DNA of 64,000 bases from Salpingoeca rosetta. Taxonomy: Eukaryota > Protista > Choanoflagellata. Shown here piece by piece: positions 13,784-60,848 of this stretch. The notes under the pieces are model-generated. The model searched no databases and was not told where the DNA came from. It was given only the letters and a program-made list of their open reading frames with translations. The stretch lies in NCBI GenBank assembly GCA_033442325.1, contig JAWQFM010000025.1, positions 36,635 to 100,634 of the forward strand, given 5' to 3'. Each line of letters begins with the position of its first letter. Within the stretch, counting starts at the first letter, position 1. The translations under genes were made by a program, and so were the position numbers.

Positions 13784-16700
13784 ATGGGTGACACCCACAG
13801 CAAGGCAGAGGGAGAGGAGAGGGCGAGGGAGGAGGTGGAGGCCTTGCTGGCACAGACGAAGCTGAGGGGTGAGGTGAAGGACAAGATCAGGGCCATCGCC
13901 AACAACACGGGTGGGGATAAAGTGAGGTGAGTGCATTACCAGAACGCCACATTGCCCTGTTGGAGTACAAAGCGCACTCTGCATGTACCGCTCTCTGCTT
14001 GCCTTGCTGCTGAGGGTTTTTGTGTGGCGCAACCACGATAGCCATGGTGGTCTGTGACTTGTTTGCCTGCTTGTCTCTTGTTCTTGGCGCACATTGAATG
14101 GCAGCTTTTGGCGGGATCGCCTCGGCGTCAGTGGGGCGAAGGCATTGGCAGAGGCGCTCAAGGACAACACCTGTCTCAGAGTGCTCAAGTTCGTACCGTG
14201 GTGATTGAGCTGCGCGTGGCATGCAGTTCTGGTGGGGCTGCTTCATGCTGGTTGTTGGCCGCCCCCTTCTCCTCTTTGCGTGCTCGTGGCATGTGTTTTA
14301 ACCGCCCCCTTTCGGTCTTGGCAGCCTGTGGGACAACGTCATCGGTAATGAGGGCACTGTGGCGTTGGCAAAGATGCTGAAGCACAACACGACCTTGACA
14401 TCACTCGAGTGAGTGTGGACACATGCATGTGTGGATGGAAATGGGCTGCGTCACTGTCGTTGTGTAATGCCCTGTGATTCGCGAATGCCCGTGTATGGGG
14501 GTGGGTTCAAGGACAATGCTTCCACCCACCCACAGCCACGCACATGCACTCACCCTTCCTTGTCCATGTGGCATCATCGCCTTGTGTGGCATCATACCAT
14601 TTTGACAGCCTGAAAAGCAGCCGCATCGGTCCTGTGGGCGCTGTGGCGTTGGCAAAGATGCTGAAGCACAACACGACCATGGCAACACTCATGTGAGTGT
14701 GGACACATGCATGTGTGGATGGAAATGGGCTGCGTCACTGCCGTTGCACAATGCCCTGTGTTGTGGGTGTGGGAATGTGCGTGTGTGGTAGGTTGGGTTG
14801 GACGACTGTGTTACCGCCCACAACCACGCACACGCTCTCATTCCCTCTTCCTCACCCATGTGACAACATCACCCTGCGTGGCATCATCCCTTCTCGACAG
14901 CCTGGACAACAATGATATCGGTTCTGAGGGTGCTGTGGCGTTGGCAAAGATGCTGAAGCACAACACGACCATGGCAACACTCATGTGAGTGTGGACACAT
15001 GCATGTGTGGATGGAAATGGGCTGCGTCACTGTCGTTGTGTAATGCCCTATGATTCACGAATGCCCGTGTATGGGGGTGGGTTCAAGGACAATGCTTCCA
15101 CCCACCCACAGCCACGCACGTGCACTCACCCTTCCTTGTCCATGTGGCATCATCGCCCTGTGTGGCATCATACCATTTTGACAGCCTGAAAAGCAGCCGC
15201 ATCGGTCCTGTGGGCGCTGTGGCGTTGGCAAAGACACTGCAGCACAACACGACCATAACATCACTCGAGTGAGTGTGGACACATGCATGTGTGGATGGAA
15301 ATGGGCTGCGTCACTATGATTCGCGAATGCCCGTGTATGGGGGTGGGTTCGAGGACAATGCTTCCACCCACCCACAGCCACGCACATGCACTCACCCTTC
15401 CTTGTCCATGTGGCATCATCGCCTTGTGTGGCATCATACCATTTTGACAGCCTGAAAAGCAACCGCATCGGTCCTGGGGGTGCTGTGGCGTTGGCAAAGA
15501 TGCTGAAGCACAACACGGCCATGACGACACTCATGTGAGTGTGGACACATGCATGTATGGATGGAAATGGGCTGCCTCACGTTGCACGTTAATGGCGTGC
15601 CGTGGGTGTGCGAATACACATGCGTGGTGGGGTGGGTTCAAGGACAATGCTTCCATCCACCCACAGCCACGTACACGCACTCACTCACTCTTCCTCACCC
15701 ATGTGGCATCATCGCCCTGCGTGGCATCATCCCTTCTCGACAGCCTGGACAACAATGATATCGGTTCTGAGGGTGCTGTGGCGTTGGCAAAGATGCTGAA
15801 GCACAACACGACCTTGACATCACTCGAGTGAGTGTGGACACGTGCATGTGTGGATGGAAATGGGCTGCGTCACTGTCGTTGTGTAATGCCCTGTGATTCG
15901 CGAATGCCCGTGTATGGGGGTGGGTTCAAGGACAATGCTTCCACCCACCCACAGCCACGCACATGCACTCACCCTTCCTTGTCCATGTGGCATCATCGCC
16001 TTGTGTGGCATCGTACCATTTTGACAGCCTGAAAAGCAGCCGCATCGGTCCTGTGGGCGCTGTGGCGTTGGCAAAGATGCTGAAGCACAACACGGCCATG
16101 ACGACACTCGAGTGAGTGTGAACACACATGCACATATGGATGGGAATGCGCTACTTCGCTACCGTTGCACCTTGTCACGTGTTGTGGGTGTGCGAATGCA
16201 CATGTGTGGTTGGTGATCTCAACGACAATGCTTCCATCCACCCACAGCCACGTACACGCACTCACTCACTCTTCCTCACCCATGTGGCATCATCGCCCTG
16301 CGTGGCATCATCCCTTCTCGACAGCCTGGACAACAATGATATCGGTTCTGAGGGTGCTGTGGCGTTGGCAAAGATGCTGAAGCACAACACGACCATAACA
16401 TCACTCGAGTGAGTGTGGACACATGCATGTGGATGGAAATGGGCTGCGTTTCTGCAATTGCACTTTTATCCCGTGCTGTGATGTGTGTGTGCGCATGCAT
16501 GTGTGTGGTGGGGTGGGTTCAACGACTGTGTTGCCACCCACAGCGATCATCACGCACTCGCGCACTCTTCCTCGCCCATGTGGCATCATCGCCCTGTGTG
16601 GCATCATGCCATCTTGACAGGCTGTACAACAACAATATCGGCAATAAGGGCGCTGTGGCGTTGGCAAAGATGCTGAAGCACAACACGACCATGACAACGC

Positions 16701-19700
16701 TCAAGTACCTTAAGTACGCGTATGTGGGCACATGCATAACAATCGATAGAGAGGGAAAATGCGCGGCGTCACTGCCGTGCTATCATTGCTGCCGTCCGGA
16801 CATGTTGCAAACAAGTAGGGCGTATTCCTACTAACTCAAAGCTATCCTGTTCTTCCTGTTGCCAACTTACCTGTTGTTCCATCTCATCTAACAGCGTTTC
16901 CCACAATCATATCACGGAGCCTGGCATGGTGAATGTGCTGAAGCAGCTGCAAGGCATGGATGCCCAAGCCAAGATTCGGTGAGGTCTCGTGTGCTTGCGA
17001 CCTTGCTCCACCCACACGTACCAGCTCAACTTCAGGCGACGCTCTTTCATCTCACATTCCCTCTTTACCGCATCACAGGCTGTTCGAGTTCAAGCTCGAG
17101 TCCTCCACCTCCGTCGCCCGCACACTGGCCACGCTCCGCACCAAGCGCCCGGACATCAACGTCGTGTTCAGCAAGTGGTGAGTTCTCACAGCAGTAGAGT
17201 GGAGTGACAGGCTTGTTCTTACTTTAAAACCCCTCCCCACCCCATCTTCTTTCCACCCTTCACGCTGCAGCCTTCTTCTCCTCAGGTATTTCGAAACAGA
17301 GGACGAGTTCGACTCTTCCGCCAAAGCTGCCTACCAAGACCAGCTCGATCTCCTGAAGCTGCTTGAGACAGGCTCCGTTCCTCTGGAGACAGCAAAAGTG
17401 TTTGTGTGCGGCGATTACGGCATCGGCAAGACGACGATGATCAAGTCGCTGGACAGTGATGATCATGAACCCCAAAGTCAGGCAGAGCAGCCACCCAACG
17501 ACCCAGATCGGCCGGATGAGCGCACACCTGGCATCCGCGTGTGTGACATGAAGCTTCAAGACACCACAAGCCAAGGCAACGAAGGTGGCAACGCTGCATC
17601 TCTTCGCGTGTACGATTTCGGCGGGCAGCTCGCATATAACGCCATCCACACGCTGATGATGTCGGACCGCTTCGCTGCCTTTGTCGTCTGCGTCGACCTC
17701 TCCCAACCAGAACAGCACGTGAAGGATCGCGCCAGCTACTGGCTGCAGTTCATCTGCACGCGACTGAAGCAGGGCATTGCGGCTGCCACAGCAACGGCAG
17801 GCGTTGATGCCATGGAAGAGGTGAAGCCGCGCGTCGTCATCGTGGGCACCAAAAGGGATATTGCTCGCAAGATAGGGCTTGTTGGAGCACATTGGCAGCC
17901 CACTTGGAGCACAGCGATGATCGCATACCTGCAGCACACCTTCGGCCACATCATCGACATCCAAGACAGCCTCATATCTCTCAACTGCCATCAGGGAGGG
18001 GATGCGGGCTTTGATCAGCTGCAAGCCCACTTGGTCCAGCACTGGCGGTGGCTGAAATCACTCGAGATGCTGGTGCCAAAGGTGGTGGGGATTGTTGGCC
18101 CGAGCATTGAGTCCGCTCGGCAACAACACCCAAGTTGGACGGTGTCTGAACTCCTGGAGTACATCCGACGCAGTAGCAGTGATGAATTCGCCCCCACGTC
18201 TGCATTGGACGAAGGCGTATTCCATCGCATTCTCAGGTGCGGTTGTCTGGCGGAGAGTGAGGGAGGACTTGTTGCCTGCTTCAGCCTCGATGTGTTCCTT
18301 TGACTGCGTTGTTCGCTGCACCTCACACTCAAGCACATTCCTTGTTCACAGATACCTCCACTCCCGCGGTGATCTTCTCTGGTACTCTAATACGCCATCT
18401 TTGGCCAACCACGTCTTCGTTTCCCCAAACTGGCTCTTGCACGATGTGATGGGCAAGGCGTTGCAGCCAGAGGGCGTGGCTTGTGGAGGCCTCCGACCAG
18501 AGAACGGGGTTGTCACCTTCAGTGATATCGAAGCATCTTTCCGCGGCATCGCCAGCGCTGACCTCGTCATCAACGTGCTGCAACACGCCCTCCTTTGCTT
18601 TGAGCTGCCACCTGCTGACGATGGCCAACGACGATTCATGCTGCCGAGTCGCGTGGAGCGCTTGGTTGGCGTTGGTGACGCCTGGCCACATGACGAGTGG
18701 CCTCTTTATGCCGGGCGGCGCATGGTGGTTGAGGACGAAGCATTGGCTCTTTGGCGCTCCCGCCTGGGTTCTTCCCGCACGTGCAAACACGACTCCACGA
18801 GTCGTTTGGAACTACACTGCAAGTGTGGCAAAACGCCTTCTTCTGCCAGCGCGATGGCGTGCAATGCCTTGGGCTGCTCCGAGGCGGCCGTGAAGTTGAC
18901 GTGTGGGTCCGAGCACTCGCTGGCGCCGAGTGCAACGCCTGGAGCTGCATGACGCAGGTGAGGACTCGTGAAAACTTATGAGCGTGGGTGCCATGTTCCT
19001 GTGTCTTTGTGGATTGATGCCTTTGCCGAACACAGCTGCTTGAACCATTAGCCATCTGGTGTACTCATCCACTTGCTTGTTTCTTGTTTGTTCTCCTGCC
19101 ATGCCGCCGCAGGTCTTCGATTTGCTGCAGGAAGAGGCGCATGGCATCGACCACGTAATCCTTGTGCTCAGTGCCAATCACTTGAAGCAGCACAAGCAGT
19201 ATCCAGCCGGGTATGACATTACTTCGCTCCACAACAAGCGTGCGAGCGATATTGTGACGTCCACCCACCACAGACCAGGCTGCTCCGTCATGGAACGTGT
19301 TGGGGATCTGCTTGTGCACAATCCCGTCCTGACAGCACCCTGGCACCAATCTGGCCACGAGTGGCACCATGCTGCCTGGCGGCTCGACGACAGCTTTGAC
19401 CGCCAGTTGCAGTGGACTGGGCCTGGCAATCATGACGTGTACTCTGCGCCACTGCCAGCCGACACCGACTTGTATCGGTGGATAGAGAACCAGATGGGAC
19501 TGGGCCTCACCCTGTCACGCGTGGAGGTGACCAAGTCCACCACAATGCTGCGGGCGTTCAAAGCGCAAGTGGAGCGGTCGGCGACGCGCCGTGGCAGTGC
19601 AAACCCGTCCAACCCCTTCAACAAGGACTTTGGGGCTGGTGATCCGGACAAGCGCGCCATGCTCGACCGACTTAAGACGCAGTTTGCAGAAACACCCGGT

Positions 19701-20249
19701 GACGTGAACCACGTCAGCGTGCTGATTGGTTTCCACGGGTGTGCTGAAGACGTGGCTGACAACATCACGGCCACGGGCACCACCAACCTCAGCAGTCCAG
19801 AGGATCCAGGTTTCTTCGGCGCTGGTATCTACCTCACACCGCAAGCTAACTATGCTGCCGGGTACTCGACACGCCTGCTCACTGGCCACTGGCGTGCACC
19901 CAACACAGACGGGGAGCACTTGATGCTCCTCTGCGCTGTCAGTGTCGGCCTGGCGTACCCCGTCACCAGGAGGGCGGACTACACTGGGAAGATGCCGCCC
20001 CTCTGGGACGCCACAAACAACATGCTCATCCCAACATGTGATTTCTTTGGTAAGCCCTTGCACAGAGGATGCGACACCCACTATGCGCAGGTGACGAAAA
20101 GCATGCATTACCAAGCCACCCCCACACCTGGCACCCTTGGCTTTGAGGAGTACGTCGTGTCGCAGGAGGCACAGGTCCTCCCGTTTGCCAAGGTGTTTGT
20201 GAATGTTGACATGAACGCGTATTTGTCGCACTTGTCGACCCTGCCATGA
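13784..20249 (+). CDS. LRR-ROC-COR (Roco-like) GTPase fused to a C-terminal PARP-like ADP-ribosyltransferase; frameshift in COR (possible pseudogene or assembly error)
   Basis: Exon 1 13784-13926; eleven 84-nt LRR exons 14105-16978; exon 17079-17177; ROC exon 17286-18236 (GDYGIGKT, ERTPGI, VYDFGGQ, IVGTKRD); COR exon 18352-18957 (YLHSRGDLLWY, PNWL, LPPGFF) with an 8-nt insertion at 18743-18750; last exon 19113-20249 (FHG, FGAGIYLT, FEEYVV). Confidence 0.85.
14325..16704 (+). repeat. Tandem array of ~270-300 bp intron plus LRR-exon cassettes
   Basis: Exons at 14325, 14609, 14901, 15185, 15451, 15744, 16028, 16325 and 16621 are each 84 nt and share CTGTGGCGTTGGCAAAGA...CACAACAC. Introns are highly similar, most starting GTGAGTGTGGACACATGCATG. 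Confidence 0.95.
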
Positions 20250-20562
20250 ACACAAGAGTGTAGATGTTCACAAGTGTGCCTGTTGTGTTGACAGCTTTTG
20301 TTTTGGCCGATTGTGTTTTGTGTGCTTTGTGTTTTGTGTGTGTGTGTGTGTTTGTTTGCGTGTATGTGTGTGTGTGAGCGTGTGTATTTGTGCGTGCTTT
20401 TCAAGTTGGCTTTGTTCTTTTTCAATCGTTCCTTCCTGCTTAGCGCCTTATCTCAGCCAATCATACAGTTCTCTCCCGTGACACAGACTGAGGAAACGGT
20501 TGTCCTGTTACAAGTGAAACGTTCATTCGCATCAAGTCCACGATTGAGTGAAAAAGCGACTC

Positions 20563-20748
20563 GACACAACACAACACCACACAACACAACACAACACAAC
20601 ACAACACAACACAACACAACACAACACAACACAACACAACACAACAATACACAACACAACACAACACAACACAACACAACACAACAATACACAACACACC
20701 ACACCACACCACACCACACCACAACACAACACAACACAACACAACACA
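20563..20748. repeat. (ACACA)n pentanucleotide microsatellite between convergent genes
   Basis: Directly visible. Confidence 0.95.
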
Positions 20749-20807: not shown

Positions 20808-22184
20808 TCAAGCGAGAGCGCGGACCAGGCGCCACACCCCACATGCAACACCGGCCACAAGCGCAGCGAGTGTTGTGGTAGCTGTGACGGCAGAGACGCG
20901 CGGGTGGACGACGGCGAAACGGAAGACCGCAAACGTTGTATCGCGCAGGAAGAGGCCGGTCTTGGACGTGGTGTGGAGCACCTGGATGGTACTGCGTTGT
21001 CGCTGCACAACCTTGTTCCACTTCGGAGCTGTTTGCTCGAAGAACTGCAGCAGGACGCATGGTATGTCGTGTGGCACTCCAAAACCTTCGTGTGGTGTGA
21101 GTGCATCCGAGAGCATGTCTGCGAGCTGAACGGCGTCAACCAGTGCCATGTTGGCACCGGCTCCAGCAAACGGGCTGACGGGGTGGCTTGCATCGCCTAT
21201 GAAGACAACGCGGCCTTGCGGGGGGATGCACATGCCGTCGCGACACGTGATCACACTTGCGGAAGGTGCAAGCAGCGCCTTGGCGATCAGCGGCTGCAGC
21301 TCATCACCGTACTCCGTCGCAGCGTCCAGTGCACGGGCCAGGAGCGCCTTGTCATGTTGCAGGGCGTCGCGTCGACACCTCGTGGTGTGTGAAGTGGGGA
21401 GAGCAAGGCCGACCAAGACGCGGTTGTTGCCCTCATCAGCAATAAACACGGACGTGCCTCTGCGGCCGCACACGCTGCCATGTCTGCGGCGAAGCGCAGA
21501 AGGGAGGGCTGCATCGGTGTCATCAACGTCCACCGTGGCACCAACAATGATGGTGTCGAGGAAGTTCGGTGTCCAGGTCGGCACAAGGATACGACGCACC
21601 ACAGAACCCACGCCATCTGCCGCCACAAGCACGTCACCTCGAAGTATTGGGCCATCCGCCAACGTTACCTCCACACAATGCTGTGTGGTTGATGTCACGC
21701 CACTCTCGCCGCGGTGGTCCTTGAGATCAATCTGTTGTAATCCGGTCACCTCTGCACCAAACCGCACGTCTGCGCCGAGTGCTTGAGCTCGCTTTAGCAG
21801 CGCTTGCCAGAGGACGAATCGGTTGATGCGGATGCCACCACCTGCGTTGCTGAACACCTCATCCGAAGCAAGCACCTTGCGCACTTGCCGGTCCACCACC
21901 TCAGCCACAATGAAGCCCTGTGAGCCTGTTGCTGACGCACGCAATTCCTCCTCCTGCCCAAGGCGTGCGACCGCACGGATACCACCCACATCTGCGCGCA
22001 ACGACAGCGAGTGGCTCAGTTGTGTCTTCATTGCCTCTGCGGATGATGCCCGCTCCAACACTACCACCCGTGTGCCGTGTGCCTCCTGATGGGTGTTCTG
22101 TGTGCTCTTTTCTTCAAGAAGCGTGCAGGCAAACGCGAGGCCGCCGATGCCACCCCCAGCGACAAGGATCGTGACCATGGTCAT
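20808..22184 (-). CDS. FAD-dependent monooxygenase (group A, aromatic hydroxylase-like), intronless, C-terminal hydrophobic anchor
   Basis: Rossmann ILVAGGGIGG, DG motif VLVAADGVGSVVR, GD motif VFIGDASHPVSPFAGAGANMALVDA; 458-aa uninterrupted ORF. Confidence 0.9.
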   Translation of the reverse strand: MTMVTILVAGGGIGGLAFACTLLEEKSTQNTHQEAHGTRVVVLERASSAEAMKTQLSHSLSLRADVGGIRAVARLGQEEELRASATGSQGFIVAEVVDRQVRKVLASDEVFSNAGGGIRINRFVLWQALLKRAQALGADVRFGAEVTGLQQIDLKDHRGESGVTSTTQHCVEVTLADGPILRGDVLVAADGVGSVVRRILVPTWTPNFLDTIIVGATVDVDDTDAALPSALRRRHGSVCGRRGTSVFIADEGNNRVLVGLALPTSHTTRCRRDALQHDKALLARALDAATEYGDELQPLIAKALLAPSASVITCRDGMCIPPQGRVVFIGDASHPVSPFAGAGANMALVDAVQLADMLSDALTPHEGFGVPHDIPCVLLQFFEQTAPKWNKVVQRQRSTIQVLHTTSKTGLFLRDTTFAVFRFAVVHPRVSAVTATTTLAALVAGVACGVWRLVRALA

Positions 22185-31508: not shown

Positions 31509-31695
31509 NNNNNNNNNNNNNNNNNNNNNNNNNNNNNNNNNNNNNNNNNNNNNNNNNNNNNNNNNNNNNNNNNNNNNNNNNNNNNNNNNNNNNNNNNNNN
31601 NNNNNNNNATCATGTGTACATTCTACAAACAGTACAGCTAAGATTATACGGCTTGTACCCACCTGCTGTCCGAACTCTCAGTGGCGCCCACAGGT

Positions 31696-31717
31696 ATGCT
31701 CGAACAACAACAACACC

Positions 31718-31764
<47 letters not shown>

Positions 31765-34011
31765 CCCTACCACCACCAACAACAACCCTACCACCACCAA
31801 CAACAACAACCCTACCACCAACAACAACAACCCTACCACCACCAGCAACAACCCTCCCAAGCACATGCGCAACAGCGACCGATGTTTGCGTCGCACGATC
31901 CCGCGGGTGCATCGCGTGCGTCCGTGCTGCATACAAGTTTGATGCTGCAGGATGGAGACATTGTTGCAGCAGCGCGCAACCCAAAGTACAAGCACGCGTT
32001 CAGCCACGACCAGCAGACGTCTGTCGTCAACAGCTCCAAGCGGCCGTCCGTGTTCCACTTTCTCTGGTCAGGCTGGGGTCTGTTCCTGCTCATTCTGGCG
32101 GAGCTGATCATGGTCAACGTGATCATCTGGCCCTGGTGGATCATCGACGAAGGCAAGGACGTGCGGGACCTCTTCTTCAAGGCGCTGCGCGCGCAGGACG
32201 CCTCGTTTTGGATCGGCTTTGCCTTCTGCACCATGGCCTGCACGTGCATGGGGATCATCGTGCTGTTCGCCTTTGCGCGGCGCCGCATCAGCGTGCCCAA
32301 GACGCCGGTGCAGATCCTGTCGGGCCTGCTTGGTGGCCTCCCGCGCGGCGCCATCATGGTCTCCTACACCACCCGCGACCCAGACATGTGCCACCCAGAC
32401 ATCCCACGCAAGGTCGCCCGCACGCTGCCGTGCCGCTGGCTGGACCAGGACTCCCTGCTCCCCGGCATCCCGCTGCGCATCGCGTGCCAGCAGGCGGCGG
32501 AGACGTGCGAGATGGGCATCATGTTCGTGTGCCAGGCGTACCTGCTGAGCCCCGTGTGCCGCGCCGAGTTTCGCGAGCTCATTGGCAACGACATCCACGG
32601 CACTGGCGGCAAGAAGCGCAACATCATCTTCATCCTCCCAGACGTCGTGCCCCTGCTCGACAACGAAGAGTGGCAATGGGGCAATCGTGGCCTTGTTGAT
32701 AACGGTGTTGGTCATGGTGTTGGTCATGGTGTTGGTCATGGTGTTGATGGCGCTATTGATGGTACCATTGATCATGGTGATGGCGGCGACCGGGAGGTGA
32801 AGGAGATCCTGCAGTTTCTGCGTCGCATTCGCAAGTGCACACCGGAGCCCATCCGTGCCGAGCGCACGCACGAGCGCAGCAGTCTTCACTGCCGCCGCAA
32901 CGGGCATGCCATGGCGCACAGCTTCCGCTTCTCCTCCACACAACCGGGCGAATCATCCACAGATGACGCAGAGGAACCTTACAACACGCCTACACACCCT
33001 GCCACCGCAGCAGCTACTGCTGCCGCCACACCATCATCAACAACAACAACAACAACAACAGCAACAACAATAACACCACCACCACCAAGAACAACACAGT
33101 CCACTGGTTCAGCTGCTACATCAGCACACCGCAGCACAGCCGCAACATCACCAACCTCCACCACCGCCACCACCACGACGCAGACGGTGATTGCGCTGAC
33201 GCCGCGCGACCGGGAGCTGATGAAACACGACCCGGCGTGGGCGGTGCTGCAGGCGTTCCAGCAGGCCGGCACGCTCACGTGGCTCGGGCAGCGGCACACC
33301 CCGTACTTCTTTGCAGAGTGGCGAGCAACGGCCTCCATGCTGTTGAGCGAGCCCAACGGCTGGACGGCATGGGGCGTCATGGCGCTCATTGCATGGCTCG
33401 TGCCCATCATCTGCGGTGTTGCAGGCGCATTTTACACGCACACGCAGGCGCGCATCGGCGTGGCCATCGTGTACCTGCTGGTGCTCGTCCCCGTGTGCGC
33501 GCTCCTGCTCATCATGTTCCGCGGGCTGGTGGGCGCCGTGCTGCCACGACCCGCACTCAAGGGCCCCGCGTCACTGCTCGTCGTGCTGTGGAAGCTCGGT
33601 ATCATCAACCGCATCAACGTCGACACGGGCGGCATCCACCGCCGCTTTGTTGACGAGTTGGCACGGATTGGCGTTGTCAACCTCAACTTCAACCCAAAGC
33701 GCGACCACCACCTCCGCTTTGCTGACGCCGCCTCTGTCGTGCGCGGCGAGACGCACCTCCCCGATGATGAGCTGGAGAACGCGTTCCTCATGCTGTGGCG
33801 TGATGCAACCTTCTCGGACTTTGCGCAGCTGCCCAAGAACCTGCAGTCCTCGTGGGTGCACCCGACAGCGGGCACGCTCGCCTACTCCATCATGTGCTCC
33901 ATGATGGTGTTGTTTGCGCTCGATCACCGCGCCCTGCACGGCACCATTGCAGGCGTGAACCTCTCCTCAAAGCCAACCACCAAGTCCCTCGGCGGCAACA
34001 TCGACAAGTGA
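31696..34011 (+). CDS. Multi-pass membrane protein with a TIR-like (TIR_2) domain; single long ORF
   Basis: PolyQ/QQPYHH N-terminus and two hydrophobic helices, then IMVSY...WLDQDSLLPG...GIMFVCQAYLLSPVCRAEF...NIIFIL (~32350-32690), a Thr-rich linker and further hydrophobic helices. Start uncertain because of the gap upstream. Confidence 0.7.
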
Positions 34012-36511: not shown

Positions 36512-37702
36512 ATGATGAAGGTGCAGGTGCTGCTTGTGCTTGCGCTGTGTGTGAGCTGGTGTGCCGGCCATGCTGTGATTGAGGAGGACGCGCTTGGCGC
36601 GCTGCACATCAACACAAGCTCTCCGTCGTCGCAGCCGGTGTATGTGAACGGGGTTGATGTGTCTGGCATGCAGAGCACCATCCGTGATCTCGAGGCAAGA
36701 ACGCAGGCGCTGCAGCAACAGCTGTGCACACTCCACCCACCCGCGGCGGACGTCACAAGCATCACGGTGCCCACGGGGACAGCCAAGTGGGTTGGCGGCG
36801 TGTTGGCGCCCAACGGCCTCATCTACGGCATCCCTTACGCCATATACGTTGTCTTGATCATCAACCCGACGACGAACACGGTCGACACCACGTCCATCAC
36901 GGGCTTGCCCTTCACCGGCTGGTGGGAAGGCGTGCTGGCGCCCAACGGGCTCATCTACGGCATTCCACACCAGGCAAGCGGCGTCCTCATCATCAACCCC
37001 AACGACAACACGGTAGACACAACCACGATCAGCGATGTCGGCCTGGGCGGCGGCGACAAGTGGGCAGGCGGCGTTCTCGCAGACAATGGCCGCATCTACT
37101 GCGCGCCGTACTCGGCTTCTTTCATGCTGATCATCGACACAGCCACCAACACGGCGGACACGACATCCATTCGCAACATCAACGCCATCAGCTACGCCTG
37201 GTACCAGGGCGTTGCAGCGCCAAACGGCCTCCTGTACTTCCTGCAGGTCCGCGCGCAAGGCATCCTCATCGTCGACCCCGCCACCAACACGGTCGACACG
37301 TCCACGCTGGCAAACGTGCAGATCGGGCCGTCCCGCGGCGTGGTGCTCTCTCGGGCCACTGGGCTCATCTACGGTGTGCCAGACACGTCCTCGCGCGTGG
37401 TCGTCCTCGATCCAACCACGAACAGCGTGGACGGCAACGCGGTGCAGGGCCTCCCCACCGACAACAGCTATTGGCTTGGCGGCGCGGTGGCGGCCAGCGG
37501 AAAGCTGGTGTTCATCCCCGCCGCTAGCTCGTCTGTCTTGTTCCTCGACCCGCTCACCAACGCCACAGACATGACCAGCATCAGGGGTCTCGGCACGGGC
37601 AACTACAAGTGGTGGGGTGGCGTCGCGGCGCCCAATGGTCGCATTTACGCCATCCCATATCATGCAAACAACGTGCTCATCATCGACGCAGGCGCCTGCT
37701 GA
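36512..37702 (+). CDS. Secreted protein: signal peptide, short beta-rich segment, coiled coil, seven ~45-aa repeats (predicted 7-bladed beta-propeller); intronless
   Basis: MMKVQVLLVLALCVSWCAG, then 7 x W.GGVLAPNG.IYGIP....VLIIDP.TNTVDTT, ending DAGAC*. Confidence 0.85.
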   Translation: MMKVQVLLVLALCVSWCAGHAVIEEDALGALHINTSSPSSQPVYVNGVDVSGMQSTIRDLEARTQALQQQLCTLHPPAADVTSITVPTGTAKWVGGVLAPNGLIYGIPYAIYVVLIINPTTNTVDTTSITGLPFTGWWEGVLAPNGLIYGIPHQASGVLIINPNDNTVDTTTISDVGLGGGDKWAGGVLADNGRIYCAPYSASFMLIIDTATNTADTTSIRNINAISYAWYQGVAAPNGLLYFLQVRAQGILIVDPATNTVDTSTLANVQIGPSRGVVLSRATGLIYGVPDTSSRVVVLDPTTNSVDGNAVQGLPTDNSYWLGGAVAASGKLVFIPAASSSVLFLDPLTNATDMTSIRGLGTGNYKWWGGVAAPNGRIYAIPYHANNVLIIDAGAC

Positions 37703-49223: not shown

Positions 49224-52065
49224 TCAATCGACGAGCTCAGCTAGCCATTCCCGGGCAGCTTTGGTGCTGGCGTGATTGGGACCAACCGTGGCTGTCCAGA
49301 TGTCGACAGTGTGTTGAATCAGCTCCCTGGCACGTGCAGTGTCGCCTTTGTTCTTGTACAGGACACCCACAGTCAGATATGCGGCTGCTGTGGAGGGGTG
49401 CAGCTCGCCCAACGCCTCCACCTTGACGTGCAGGCTTCGCTCATAGTAGTGGATGGCGCGGTCTGCCTCACCCTTGCTGTTGAACACCTGACCCAAGTTG
49501 GCGCATGTTGTTGCCACCTGCGCGTGTGTCTTCCCCAACGTGTCCTCGTAGGTGTGCAGCGCCTTGTTGAAGCACTCAATTGCGCGATCATACTCACCCT
49601 TCTTGGAGCACGCCACGCCAAGCTCGGCGTACGCGGTGGCTGTGGAGGGGTGTTTCTCGCCCAATGCCTCGACCTTGATCCGCAGGCTCTGCTGGCAGTG
49701 CTCAATGGCACGATCGTACTCTCCTTTGCCGGTGTACGCCTGGCCAAGGGCGAGCAACGCCATTGCAGTGTCCGGATGCCTCTCACCAACCGTATCCATC
49801 CTGATGCGCAGGCACGTCTGGCAATACGCGAGCGCGCGATCAAAGTCGCCCTTGCCGTTGTACATCTGGCCGAGGCTGAGCAGCGTGGCTGCTGTGGCCG
49901 GGTGGCTGTCGCCCAGCACAGCCTGCCGGATTTGCAGGCACTTCTCGTAGCACTCAATGGCCCGAGCAGATGCGCCCTTCCTGTTGTACACAGTGCCCAG
50001 GCCATGGTATGCCGCAGCTGTGGAGGGATGCTTCTCGCCCATTGCTTTCACACCAATGTTCAGCGCCTTGTTGAAGCACTCAATCGCACGGTCATACTTG
50101 CCGCTGTTGTAGAGCACCACACCAAGCTCGTTGAAGGTGCTCGCTGTGCTTGGGTGCAGCTCGCCCAGCGTATCCACCTGAATGCGCAGGCCCTCGCCAT
50201 AATACTCCGCAGCGCGTCCATACTCGCCTTTCCTGTTGTAAGTCTGAGCAAGACAATTGTACAGGGTGCCTGTTTCTGGGTGCCTCTCGCCCAATGCCGC
50301 CGACGTAATCTGGAGGCTTTGCCTGAACAACTGGATGGCGCGATCGTACTCGCCCTTGGCGCTGTGCACCTGGCCAAGGGAGGCCTGCGTGGTGGCTGTG
50401 GAGGGATGCGTCTTGCCCACCGTGCCCAGCTTGATCTGCAGGCTCTGTTCGTAGCAGTGGATTGCGCGATCGTATTCCCCTTTCCTGCTGTGCACTTGGC
50501 CGAGCTCGTGGAATGTGGCTGCTGTGGATGGGTCTTTGTCGCCCAATGTGTCCAACTTGATCTGCAGGATTTTCTCGAAACACTCAATGGCTCTGTCGTG
50601 CTCGCCCTTGTTCTTGAACACCTGGCCAATCGCGCCGTAAGCAGCGATAACGTTCTCGTGCGTTGGCCCATAGTCTCTCAAGCACGCGTCCAGCGCTCGC
50701 TCGAGCAGCGGCAACGCGTGATCAAAGTCACCAGCCTTCAACAGGGATGCACCAACGTAGTAGCAGAGGCGCGCAAACTGGGGCGTATCAGCCTGCTCGT
50801 CATCAGCTGGCTCCACAAAGGAGAGCATCTCTGAGAAGCACCAGTTCCGCATCTGGTCCTTGACCACCTTGTTCAAGTGTAGGAAGCCAACGCCGTCCTC
50901 GATTGCCTTGAAGATCATCTCCTTGTCCTTGGGGTCCCAGGCGTCTGCCCGCTCGGCCTGCACGCGCACCATTGCGTCTGTTACGGCCTCGTGATCCTCC
51001 AGCACGGCCTCCTTCAGCGCGTCTCGCTGTGCGTTCGGCAGCCGGATGGTGAGTTGCACGTCTTCCTGACTTGCGCTGCAGAAGATCTCCCACAGGCACC
51101 ATGCCCGTGTCAGCGGCACGGGGTCGTGCCACGGTGTCAACACCAGCAGCACATGGCCAATCGCAGCAATGGACTTCTTGAACGTTGTGCTCCACCTGCA
51201 GTTGGGGTTGGGGGGGGGGGTTGGGGCAAGGACGGGAGGTTGAGGGCATGGGTTGCAGAGGTGACAGGTGGAAGTGAACAACGAACACACACAGACACAC
51301 ATGTATACACGCACACACGAACGCACACACACACACACGTACACACACACACACAAACGCACACACACACACACACACACACACAAACGCACACACACAG
51401 GTACAGACACAAGCTCCATACCACTCTTGAGGAAGGTTGGCTGTGATGTCCGTGTTCTGGTTGTTGATGAAGAGATCGAACCAGAAGAACACTTGCGCTT
51501 CGTCTTCGCCGTCGTCCTCGCCTTGCTCGCCTGCAAACTCCAGGAGGGTGCCAATCACGTCCACGATCTTGTAGCGCCACGCGTGCGACACAAACACGGT
51601 CGCCTTCCTGCCCACGTGCTGTGAATCCATGACGTCGACATACGCACACTGCTTCGCCTTGGTGCGTGGGATCACCACGCTGTCGCACGCCTCTTTGGTG
51701 GTCATCTCCTGGTACGTGTCTGGGTGTGCTGCCTTGAGATCGGCAAGGAACTGGCGCAGCCCAGCAGGCGACACGCCTTCCTTGCGAATCGCATGTTCGT
51801 CCTCGGCAGAAACAGTAGTTGAAGTGGTCGGTGCTGGATGCGCTTGGTATTGTGTCACGCCCTTTGCGTCTTCGCCATCGTCGCCTTGCTGCTCTTCTTC
51901 GCTGGTAGGCGGCTGTTGTGGCTTCGCGGTGCTTGACACTGGCGTCTCATTCACCACGTCAACAGCGGCCGTTGAAGCGGCGAGCTCGCCTCCTTTCTGT
52001 CGTGCTTCGGCTGGCTCTGGGTCGCGAGTGGTGGACGAGGAGTGGCGGCGACAGCAGGAGAACAT
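49224..52065 (-). CDS. HET/TIR-like domain plus ~12 x 42-aa TPR repeats
   Basis: Two exons (intron 51196-51421). [32 protein letters not shown], then HPSTA..LG.V...KGEYDRAI repeats; N-terminus MFSCC. Confidence 0.9.
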
Positions 52066-58164: not shown

Positions 58165-60848
58165 ATGGACGACGACAACAACGAGCAGCACCGCCTGACG
58201 GACGGCGTGTCTGTGGAGGCGTTCAAGACCTTCCTCGCAGACCTGCAGAGCGAGTTCCCCGGCACGTACACTGAGATGACCACGGAGGATGCCTGTAAGC
58301 AACTCGTGGTCCCACGCACCCAGCAGGACAACTGCGCGTACGTCGACCTGTTGCGCAAGCAGTCATCACATGAACATGTGGGCAAGGCCACCGTGTTTGT
58401 GTCGCACGCCTGGCGATACAAGATCGCAGACGTGCTCAACGTCTTGCTGGAGTTTGCGGAAGAGCAAGCAGCGAAGGAAGACGGCCAGCCCGTGTTCTTC
58501 TGGTTTGATCTCTTCATGAACAACCAAAACGCCAACGTCACGGCCAACCTCCCACAAGAGTGGTGCGTTTTGTGTGTGTGTGTGTGTGTCTGTGTGTGTG
58601 CGTGTGTGTATGTGCGCGTGTGTATGCGTGTGTGTGTGCATGTGTGTGTGTGTGTCTTCATGTGTGTGTTGTTGGTACTTTACTCGTTTCTTGCACACTC
58701 CCACATCCGCACACACGCCTTTCTCCTCACAACCCCGTCCACACCACAACACCACCCCCTCCTAACTGCAGGTGGAGCACGACGTTCAAGGAGTCGATTG
58801 CCAACATTGGGCGCGTGCTGCTGGTGCTCATGCCGTGGCGTGACCCTATGCCACTGACGCGCGCGTGGTGTCTGTGGGAGATCTTCTGCGGCATCAGCAG
58901 CGAGGGCACAGAGGTCAACATCCGCCTGCCGAAGAGTGAAGAGAAGGAATTGGAAGAGGCCATCCGCGGCAACTTCGAGGCGGTGACCGACACGCTGGTG
59001 CGCGTGCAGGCCGAGCGGGCCGAGGCCTTCAACCCATACGACAAGGACATGATCTTCAAGGCGATTCAGGATGGCGTTGGCTTTGCGGCACTCAACCAAG
59101 CAGTGAAGGACCAGCTGCGCGCGTGGTGTTTGGAGAAGGCGGTGGCTGCTGTGGAGGCGATGCGTGCGCGTGGAGAAGACGAGACAGAGGCGTTTGCGGA
59201 GCTGTGCGGTCAAGTTGCAAGTGTGCTTGACCAGTTTGGCGAGTATGCAAAGGCAGTTGAGTACTACAAGTTGGCGAAAGAGATTTTCGTGAAGACAGTG
59301 GGCGAGAGACACCCAAAGACCGCGAGTGTGTATGTGAACTTGGGCGTTTCATTCGACAGCATGGGCAACCACGATCAAGCAATAGAGTGGTACGAGAAGG
59401 CGAAGGACAACAGGGTGGAGGTGCTTGGGGAAAAGCATGCCGGCACGGCACAAGTCTTGAACAACCTGGGTAACGTCTACGATAGCAAGGGCGAGTACGA
59501 CAAGGCGATTGAACACTTTGAGGCAGCGAGAGCTACCTTTGCGGAGGCGCAGGGAGAAATGCATCCAGACACAGCAAGCACGTGCAGTAACCTGGGCAAG
59601 GCATACTCCAGCAAGGGCGACTATGACAAGGCAATCGCGTACCATGAGACAGCGAAAGAGATCCAGTTGACACTGAGGGGGGACAAGCACCCAACTACAG
59701 CAGAAAGCTTCAACAATTTGGGGAGTGCCTACCTCGACAAGGGCGAGTACGACAAGGCGATTGATTACTTTCACAGGGCGAGGGCGGTGTACGTGGAGAC
59801 GCTGGGAAGGATGCACCAGAGCACAGCGCACACATGCCACAACCTTGGCGTCGCGTACAGAATCAAGGGTGAGAGTGAGAAGGCGATGGGGTGGTACGAG
59901 GAGGCAAAAGAAATCAAGATGCGCACAGTTGGGGAGACGCACGCGAGCACAGCACAGACCTGGAACGCGTTGGGCGCCATCTACAACAGCAACGGCGAGC
60001 ATGACAAGGCGCTTGCATACCACAAGATGGCAAACCGCATCTACACGGAGGCGCTCGGGGAGAAACACCCGGACACCGCAGACACCTATGGCAGCCTGGG
60101 CAATGTCTACAGCAGCAAGGGCCAGTACGACAAGTCGATTGAGTTGTATGAGAAGGCCAGGGCCATCTACGTTGAAACCTTGGGGCCAGTTCATCCACGC
60201 ACAGCAGAGATTCAAAACAGCCTGGGCATCGCACACAGCAGCAACGGCGAGGTCACCAAGGCGATTGAGGCCTTCGAAAAGGCGAGGGAGATTGGCGTGG
60301 CGACATTGGGAGAGGAGCACCCGAGCACAGCAATGGCGTCCTTCAACATCGGTCTACTGCACGACCAACACGGTGACATGGAGCAGGCGTGCGCGTATAT
60401 GCAGCAGGCACATGGCGTGTTCGCCGCCACGCTCGGGGCAGACCATCCCAACACACGCGCGGCTCAGGACAACCTGCAACGGATGAGACAACACGTTGCT
60501 GACGCCGCACGCGCCGGTCCAGCGGCACCACCACAAGTTGTTCCCGGACACTCCAGCACACCGCCCCTTGCCGGGTGGTTGCAGAAGCGTGGGCGGTGGA
60601 GACGAGCCTGCCGCACGTGCTGGGTTTCCCTGGATGACGAGGACCACTTGGTGTATGGCAAGTCTGCAGAACGGCCGCCGAAGCGTCGCGTGCCGCTGTC
60701 CAGTGTGGTTTCCGTTGAGCTCGCCAGCGCGGGCCAGGAGCTGCGTGTTGCTGTTCCGGGCCGGACGTTTGTGTTCCGCGCACATGCAAGCGCTGGGGCC
60801 ACGCTTGAGGACTGGTGCGCCGCCATTCGTCGTGGCATGTGTGGGTGA
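58165..60848 (+). CDS. HET/TIR-like domain plus ~10 x 42-aa TPR repeats plus C-terminal PH domain
   Basis: Two exons (intron 58563-58771, same position as in the paralogue). [30 protein letters not shown]; TPRs; PH-like LAGWLQKRG...WVSL...RTFVFRA...LEDWCAAIRR. Confidence 0.9.

Follow-up and report, generated by a model that had tools for sequence, protein, structure and literature searches.

The locus analysed here, PTSG_09099 of the choanoflagellate Salpingoeca rosetta, probably encodes a member of a Roco protein family of choanoflagellates in which a PARP-type ADP-ribosyltransferase (ART) takes the place of a kinase or death-domain output. It lies in a window (the whole stretch of DNA that was analysed) of 64,000 nucleotides, taken from contig JAWQFM010000025.1 of assembly GCA_033442325.1 at positions 36,635 to 100,634 of the forward strand; coordinates below are those of the window. 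An earlier note, made from the letters of this DNA alone, had described the gene as an NLR-like fusion of leucine-rich repeats (LRRs), ROC, COR and PARP. The domain architecture held good within a single gene, whilst the likeness to NLRs is an analogy only, as a Roc domain is present instead of a STAND NTPase.

The gene model was built from the DNA and comprises 16 exons on the + strand at 13784-20249, in a eukaryotic, intron-rich region. Exon borders are GT/AG throughout with consistent phases, the start codon is at 13784 and the stop codon at 20247-20249. The spliced product has approximately 1,286 residues, with a break in the reading frame marked as X. Its features are as follows.

13784-13926, + strand: exon 1, with the ATG and a charged, probably helical N-terminal segment; a GT donor follows 13926 and the peptide is identical to the PTSG_09099 N-terminus.
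14105-16978, + strand: exons 2-12, an array of eleven 84-nt LRR exons, recognised from an exon-pattern scan, tandem periods and an open spliced translation.
17079-17177, + strand: exon 13, either a linker that joins the LRRs to Roc or a C-terminal LRR cap, with canonical AG/GT borders and the frame kept.
17286-18236, + strand: exon 14, the Roc GTPase and the start of COR-A, recognised by Pfam and motifs.
17410-17433, + strand: Roc P-loop motif GDYGIGKT.
17614-17628, + strand: Roc motif DFGGQ.
17848-17859, + strand: Roc motif TKRD.
18352-18957, + strand: exon 15, the remaining COR-A and most of COR-B, frame-broken; recognised by the Pfam COR-A match and paralog identity, with the donor CAG/GTGAGG after 18957.
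18743-18750, + strand: insertion of 8 bases within COR-B that imperfectly duplicates, in tandem, the 8 bases after it; missing from 11 of the 11 paralogs covering the site.
19113-20249, + strand: exon 16, the end of COR-B, a linker, ART and the stop; acceptor CAG at 19110-19112, phase 0, with a 378-codon open frame.
19485-20246, + strand: PARP-type ADP-ribosyltransferase catalytic domain, recognised by AlphaFold2, Foldseek, VIA-align and the family profile.
19734-19736, + strand: triad His, in the motif FHG.
19830-19832, + strand: triad Tyr, in the motif GAGIY.
20148-20150, + strand: triad Glu, the second Glu of the motif FEEYVV.

The gene features were found where the earlier note had placed them. 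It had spoken only of a "repaired" protein, and the 8-bp break itself was located here.

The protein has the features that define Roco proteins, a Roc domain followed by COR. A complete Roc GTPase had been read from GDYGIGKT, DFGGQ and TKRD and was borne out, with all three motifs in place and a Pfam Roc (PF08477) score on the locus of 36.6 bits, above the cut-off of 27. The G1, G3 and G4 motifs are intact and are conserved in the full-length paralog models. The best PDB sequence match of the Roc exon was the Methanosarcina barkeri Roco protein 4wnr, and the PDB matches of a family Roc-COR profile were only LRRK2 and an archaeal Roco. The COR domain claimed to follow Roc was confirmed by a COR-A match, by the LRRK2 profile match and by superposition of a structure model. 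The COR-A match (E 4.8e-7) reached 30.2 bits, under its cut-off of 35.3, with a scanned open reading frame (ORF) piece that covered profile positions 43-140 of 143. In 11 paralogs COR is contiguous, and exon 15 is 64-82% identical to it. Structure was modelled for Roc-COR-ART on the paralog PTSG_13043 (residues 290-1170), and this model superposed on LRRK2 Roc-COR (residues 1329-1943) with a Z of 17.2 over 455 residues and on the C. tepidum RocCOR structure 3dpu with a Z of 16.9 over 424 residues.

Over 18080-18240, at the Roc and COR exons, the public sequencing run X3 gave two contigs of like depth (67.8 and 58.6). One matches the window letter for letter; the other shows 7 differences over 161 nt and could represent a further haplotype or a near-identical Roc/COR exon copy missing from the assembly.

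For the C-terminal domain, the ART fold and the His-Tyr-Glu (H-Y-E) triad are established as far as sequence and predicted structure go. The note had matched this region to the H-Y-E triad of PARP/ARTD enzymes, and FHG, GAGIY and FEEYVV at their expected sites, a profile match and the predicted fold all agree. Across an alignment of 42 ART homologs, Tyr and Glu never vary and His is conserved in at least 90%; among the 12 family copies compared all three residues are invariant. A profile of the 42 sequences matched the catalytic domain of tankyrase 1 (E 4e-5), with the HG, GxGIY and EY motifs aligned with its H, Y and E. The AlphaFold2 model of the domain had a predicted local distance difference test score (pLDDT) of 94.7 and a predicted template modelling score (pTM) of 0.91. 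Foldseek with this model returned only PARP catalytic domains among the top 50 matches listed, and VIA-align superposed it on tankyrase 2 with a Z of 16.6 and a root-mean-square deviation of 2.6 Å over 167 residues. Structure prediction thus gave a PARP catalytic fold, at a sequence identity of only approximately 17% to tankyrases and other PARP/ARTD enzymes. Close homologs of the domain score 35-61 bits with Pfam PARP. When 1.84 billion representative proteins were searched exhaustively, 434 relatives came up, of which 184 reached E 1e-10 or better. A single-sequence phmmer search of the last exon against PDB had given only a chance match to enoyl-CoA hydratase, and the family profile was required instead. 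No ART subfamily was assigned, as tankyrase, PARP15 and PARP12 were level within 1 Z unit.

The last exon belongs to the LRR-Roc-COR gene, since the splice sites are canonical and keep the frame, COR-B runs into this exon and the paralogs keep the same order. The donor CAG/GTGAGG after 18957 and the acceptor at 19110-19112 are both canonical and both phase 0. In the PTSG_13043 model a predicted helix crosses the exon junction, and the Roc-COR superposition reaches model residue 552-586, thus entering the last exon by approximately 65 residues or more. The order Roc, COR-A, COR-B, N-terminal part of the last exon and ART is kept in ten complete paralogs, and an eleventh copy, ended by a contig edge, has the same order from mid-Roc on. 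The gap at the COR-to-ART junction is 150-370 nt in the paralogs. Elsewhere, COR and ART are found together on single ORFs, in a Logan contig protein, an S. infusionum transcript and a Barroeca monosierra protein.

The earlier note had counted approximately 11 LRRs of 28 residues, and eleven 84-nt exons with one repeat each were indeed found. They were located by a regular-expression scan for AG, 84 nt and GT with an open phase, and start at 14105, 14325, 14609, 14901, 15185, 15451, 15744, 16028, 16325, 16621 and 16895. Each encodes one 28-residue repeat of the RNI type (LRR_6-like), with AG/GT borders and the same phase. The introns within the array are similar, at approximately 190-215 nt, with a first intron of 136 nt, and the array shows tandem periods of 266 and 293 nt. 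The repeats of PTSG_09099 are very alike among themselves. Across the family the number of LRR exons runs from approximately 4 to 11, with 4-10 in the paralogs. Among 42 closely related repeats, amino-acid entropy peaks at positions 2, 3, 5, 8, 9, 25 and 26, which form the β-strand face, and the helix positions are nearly invariant. The ratio of non-synonymous to synonymous substitution rates (dN/dS; pooled Nei-Gojobori) was 1.66 at the variable β-face positions, which were picked post hoc by their variability, versus 0.28 elsewhere in the repeats.

The ART domain occurs in 13 copies in the S. rosetta genome, at 52-77% identity, and there are weaker relatives besides. The copies differ from one another by a synonymous divergence of approximately 1, and dN/dS is approximately 0.2 both in Roc and in the last exon, from the end of COR-B to ART, with PTSG_09099 like the other copies. 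These are old copies, with purifying selection acting on Roc and on the last exon. Three more diverged paralogs (L028 on contig C34, L030 on C13 and L032 on C25) have a different and less uniform LRR consensus and a longer COR-to-ART intron of approximately 355-373 nt, a sign that the family may fall into two subfamilies.

Eleven of the 13 copies lie no more than 65 kb from a contig end (binomial P approximately 1e-7, with a threshold chosen afterwards). PTSG_09099 itself is approximately 50 kb from a contig end bearing CCCTAA repeats: 27 of these stand at C25:1-240, the start of the contig from which the window was taken (from C25:36635). The window is thus subtelomeric. Beyond the gene, the 3' flank contains a (TG)n tract at 20319-20396 and a 37-copy ACACA microsatellite at 20564-20748, followed by a convergent FAD-dependent oxidoreductase gene at 20808-22184 on the - strand. 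Further along are an intronless 776-aa ORF at 31681-34011 on the + strand, whose weak TIR_2 match of 25.8 bits stays under the cut-off of 28, and two divergently oriented, paralogous-looking ORFs of approximately 770 aa at 49224-51554 (- strand) and 58560-60848 (+ strand). The latter two carry TPR_12/TPR_10 arrays scoring up to 435 bits, and the N-terminal approximately 250 aa of both are without a Pfam match. This chromosome end looks rich in repeat-sensor genes, namely the Roco-PARP gene, the TIR-like ORF and the two TPR-array ORFs.

The closest public proteins are S. rosetta PTSG_ models, and PTSG_09099 maps onto the locus at 100% identity. Its public entry is 1133 aa long and labelled "hypothetical protein". 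It is shorter than our 16-exon model, leaving out four of the eleven LRR exons and bridging the frame break with an artificial intron at 18728-18849 that removes 38 COR profile positions, mostly of COR-B. The PARP domain is not listed in its precomputed Pfam annotation. Seven public S. rosetta models have the same architecture, along with two short or truncated ones, and several paralogs are auto-named "Poly [ADP-ribose] polymerase" by UniProt. N-terminal myristoylation of PTSG_09099 (MGDTHSK, with Gly2 and Ser6) was considered and dropped, as Asp3 is disfavoured in the usual myristoylation consensus and the paralogs begin MSGG or MAGG.

Relatives of the family occur in two other choanoflagellates, Barroeca monosierra and S. 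infusionum. The B. monosierra protein has an LRR-Roc-like-COR-ART arrangement; this protein (P0166) matches the Roc and COR profiles and its gene model is without the P-loop motif and the HG motif. The S. infusionum transcript (P0015) combines COR-A with PARP. It has no recognisable similarity to the Roc of PTSG_09099 and is retained as a more distant relative rather than a close one. Partners of the wider ART clade include ARM_LRRK2 repeats, a protein kinase, an ANF-receptor ectodomain, PH, NHL/laminin-EGF, MSP/SAM and actin-like modules. In the fusions P0067, P0079, P0164, P0006 and P0031, mostly from environmental contigs, ART stands at the C-terminal end, and the N-terminal part is an ANF-receptor ligand-binding domain, NHL/laminin-EGF repeats, a protein kinase, LRRK2-type ARM repeats or a PH domain. 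Judged by these domain combinations, the ART clade is a mobile module. Some of its proteins look like receptor-type PARPs, a class of which we know no description.

The earlier note knew of no characterised protein with this architecture, and a search of the full-text literature likewise returned no description of a Roco-PARP protein and no mention of six PTSG identifiers of the family, PTSG_09099 included. Perina et al. 2014 (PMC4245714) listed eight types of choanoflagellate PARP and mentioned one linked to actin in S. rosetta, with no Roc or LRR, and in another published survey (PMC9688111) no tankyrase turned up in S. rosetta. The proteins themselves are already public with automatic domain labels.

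By analogy with LRRK2 and bacterial Roco proteins, Roc-COR would cycle between GTP and GDP, probably as a COR-mediated dimer. This cycle would gate the C-terminal enzyme, with the LRR solenoid serving as an input or auto-inhibitory arm. Once released, the ART would be expected to move ADP-ribose from nicotinamide adenine dinucleotide (NAD+) to protein targets or to itself. The PARP1-type helical regulatory domain is absent from the protein, which suggests that regulation comes from the Roco part. The H-Y-E triad is needed for poly(ADP-ribose) activity and is not sufficient for it, as in PARP3 and PARP4, and sequence does not discriminate between mono-modification, poly-modification and mainly NAD+ consumption.

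Given the family expansion, the contig-end position and the variable LRR surface, we infer that the likeliest input is recognition of variable ligands, either non-self or environmental. A fuller scenario, which we offer tentatively and consider rather unlikely, is that a ligand bound on the variable LRR face would free the GTP-gated PARP-type enzyme, which would ADP-ribosylate targets or deplete NAD+ with an immune or cell-death output. The case for such a recognition or immune role, which the earlier note had put forward as a ligand-gated, NAD+-consuming receptor, is circumstantial and is made from the expansion, the location close to contig ends, the variation in the LRR face and in the number of repeats, the nearby TIR-like ORF and the TPR-array genes.

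Several observations weigh against an intact Roco-ART gene with a role in recognition. Pfam PARP (PF00644) scores 23.8 bits on the locus (E 3.7e-5), below its cut-off of 26.7. The insertion at 18743-18750 shifts the reference frame, which then meets a TGA at 18950-18952, and the public model carries the frame break as well. No splice joint of the locus, the COR-to-ART joint included, was recovered in two raw RNA runs, each read to about a quarter; these placed 16 and 84 reads on the locus, only 2 of them at 99% identity or better. On the concave face of the LRRs, the dN/dS of 1.66 comes from positions chosen post hoc and is suggestive rather than a test. Telomere repeats were absent at the other ten contig ends checked, and contigs may break at repeated genes. 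Lastly, the signalling modules to which the ART clade is fused suit a general signalling output no less than an immune one.

The last of these points leads to the strongest alternative for the role of the protein, which is an ordinary intracellular signalling or cytoskeletal Roco, comparable to LRRK2 or Dictyostelium Roco, with ADP-ribosylation as its output and no part in immunity, non-self recognition or cell death. Characterised Roco proteins serve in trafficking, the cytoskeleton and chemotaxis. The ART clade is joined to kinase, PH, ANF-receptor, ARM_LRRK2 and actin-like modules, and PARP-type enzymes mostly modify proteins rather than simply burn NAD+. The close likeness of the LRRs of PTSG_09099 to one another also fits such a role. 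Against it speak 13 diverged copies with 4-11 LRRs each, variability centred on the LRR β-face, 11 of 13 copies near contig ends, and a weak TIR-like ORF and TPR-array genes as neighbours. On balance this alternative is a credible one that we nevertheless think falls short of being probable.

The frame break raises a different question, whether this copy is a recent pseudogene in which the 8 bases are real and the product ends after COR-A, leaving only the paralogs as functional Roco-PARPs. As assembled, the product of PTSG_09099 would indeed be without COR-B and ART. The insertion is found in none of the 11 paralogs covering the site, and it is not peculiar to the present assembly, as the public model from an earlier assembly skipped 18728-18849. 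Practically no reads at 99% identity or better fell on the locus in the two RNA runs. Against this, the 378 downstream codons are open, the H-Y-E triad is kept and dN/dS is approximately 0.2, like that of the other copies.

Public runs were aligned on 16700-20400, which yielded one informative contig, of depth 72, from the independent run X3 (2023). It spans an intron and is thus genomic DNA or unspliced RNA. The contig is identical to the window for approximately 300 nt upstream and 520 nt downstream of a variant patch, a different 70-nt stretch at 18679-18751 that is without the 8 bases. When rebuilt from the listed differences, the X3 version reads through and restores the family motif ALALPPGFFPHVQT. 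Not one 20-mer of the patch recurs at a paralog locus; a chimera with an assembled paralog is thereby excluded for this contig. Run X1 had no coverage of 18684-19675 and was uninformative on the break, and a protein search with the exon-15 ORF for a second witness gave only a 50%-identical fragment. Taken together, an intact allele of PTSG_09099 exists, and we consider it unlikely that the copy is a pseudogene. The break in the reference may stem from faulty assembly, mark a tract of gene conversion or be a genuine lesion specific to the strain, given here in no order of preference.

The RNA reads at 19304-19675 come from expressed paralogs, as shown by their fixed differences and loose ends. 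That the last exon is a separate PARP gene merely downstream of an LRR-Roc-COR gene is most improbable: it is a long ORF by itself and no RNA joint 18957/19113 was recovered at the locus, but the canonical donor and acceptor match in phase, the order with its gap is conserved in 11 paralogs, the modelled helix and COR-B fold extend over the junction, and other organisms carry COR plus ART on single ORFs.

A Roco protein with a PARP-type output thus remains our reading of the locus. Roco proteins draw interest through the part of LRRK2 in Parkinson's disease, and PARPs hold a central place in stress and antiviral signalling. A Roco-PARP fusion made by nature would give a Roc-COR switch that controls an easily assayed enzyme, and would show that ADP-ribosylation can come under small-GTPase control. 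If the recognition scenario is true, the family would be a third solution of the "repeat sensor, nucleotide switch, effector" kind, beside STAND NLRs and TIR-based systems, and would bear on the organisation of innate immunity before the origin of animals. The genetic tractability of S. rosetta makes the recognition question directly testable.

Among known systems, the family is close to the Roco proteins (LRRK2/LRRK1, DAPK1, MASL1, Dictyostelium Roco1-11 and Chlorobium tepidum Roco), with which it shares the LRRs, the Roc-COR tandem and a C-terminal enzyme. It differs from them in that its output is a PARP-type ART and not a kinase or death domain, and in being without ARM/ANK or WD40. Its LRRs are also distinct, being of the RNI type (LRR_6) with one repeat per exon, and it is present in 13 copies, mostly near contig ends. 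With tankyrases and other PARP/ARTD enzymes (PF00644) the family has the ART fold and H-Y-E triad in common, and its best structural matches are tankyrases 1 and 2, level with PARP15 and PARP12. Unlike those enzymes, its catalytic domain is joined to a GTPase switch, and its Pfam score is at or below the cut-off for PTSG_09099. No ankyrin or SAM domain was matched by Pfam in any PTSG_09099 exon; the protein is thus not a tankyrase.

Nor is it an NLR, as it lacks a STAND NTPase: no NACHT or NB-ARC match was found in PTSG_09099. Its switch is a Ras-like Roc GTPase with COR rather than a NACHT/NB-ARC STAND ATPase, and it is ordered sensor-switch-effector, whereas NLR/STAND proteins are ordered effector-switch-sensor. 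With animal and plant NLRs and bacterial Avs/bNACHT the family nonetheless shares the logic of a repeat sensor, a nucleotide switch and an effector, as well as multiple copies and variable repeats, and with animal NLRs it also shares LRRs of the RNI type.

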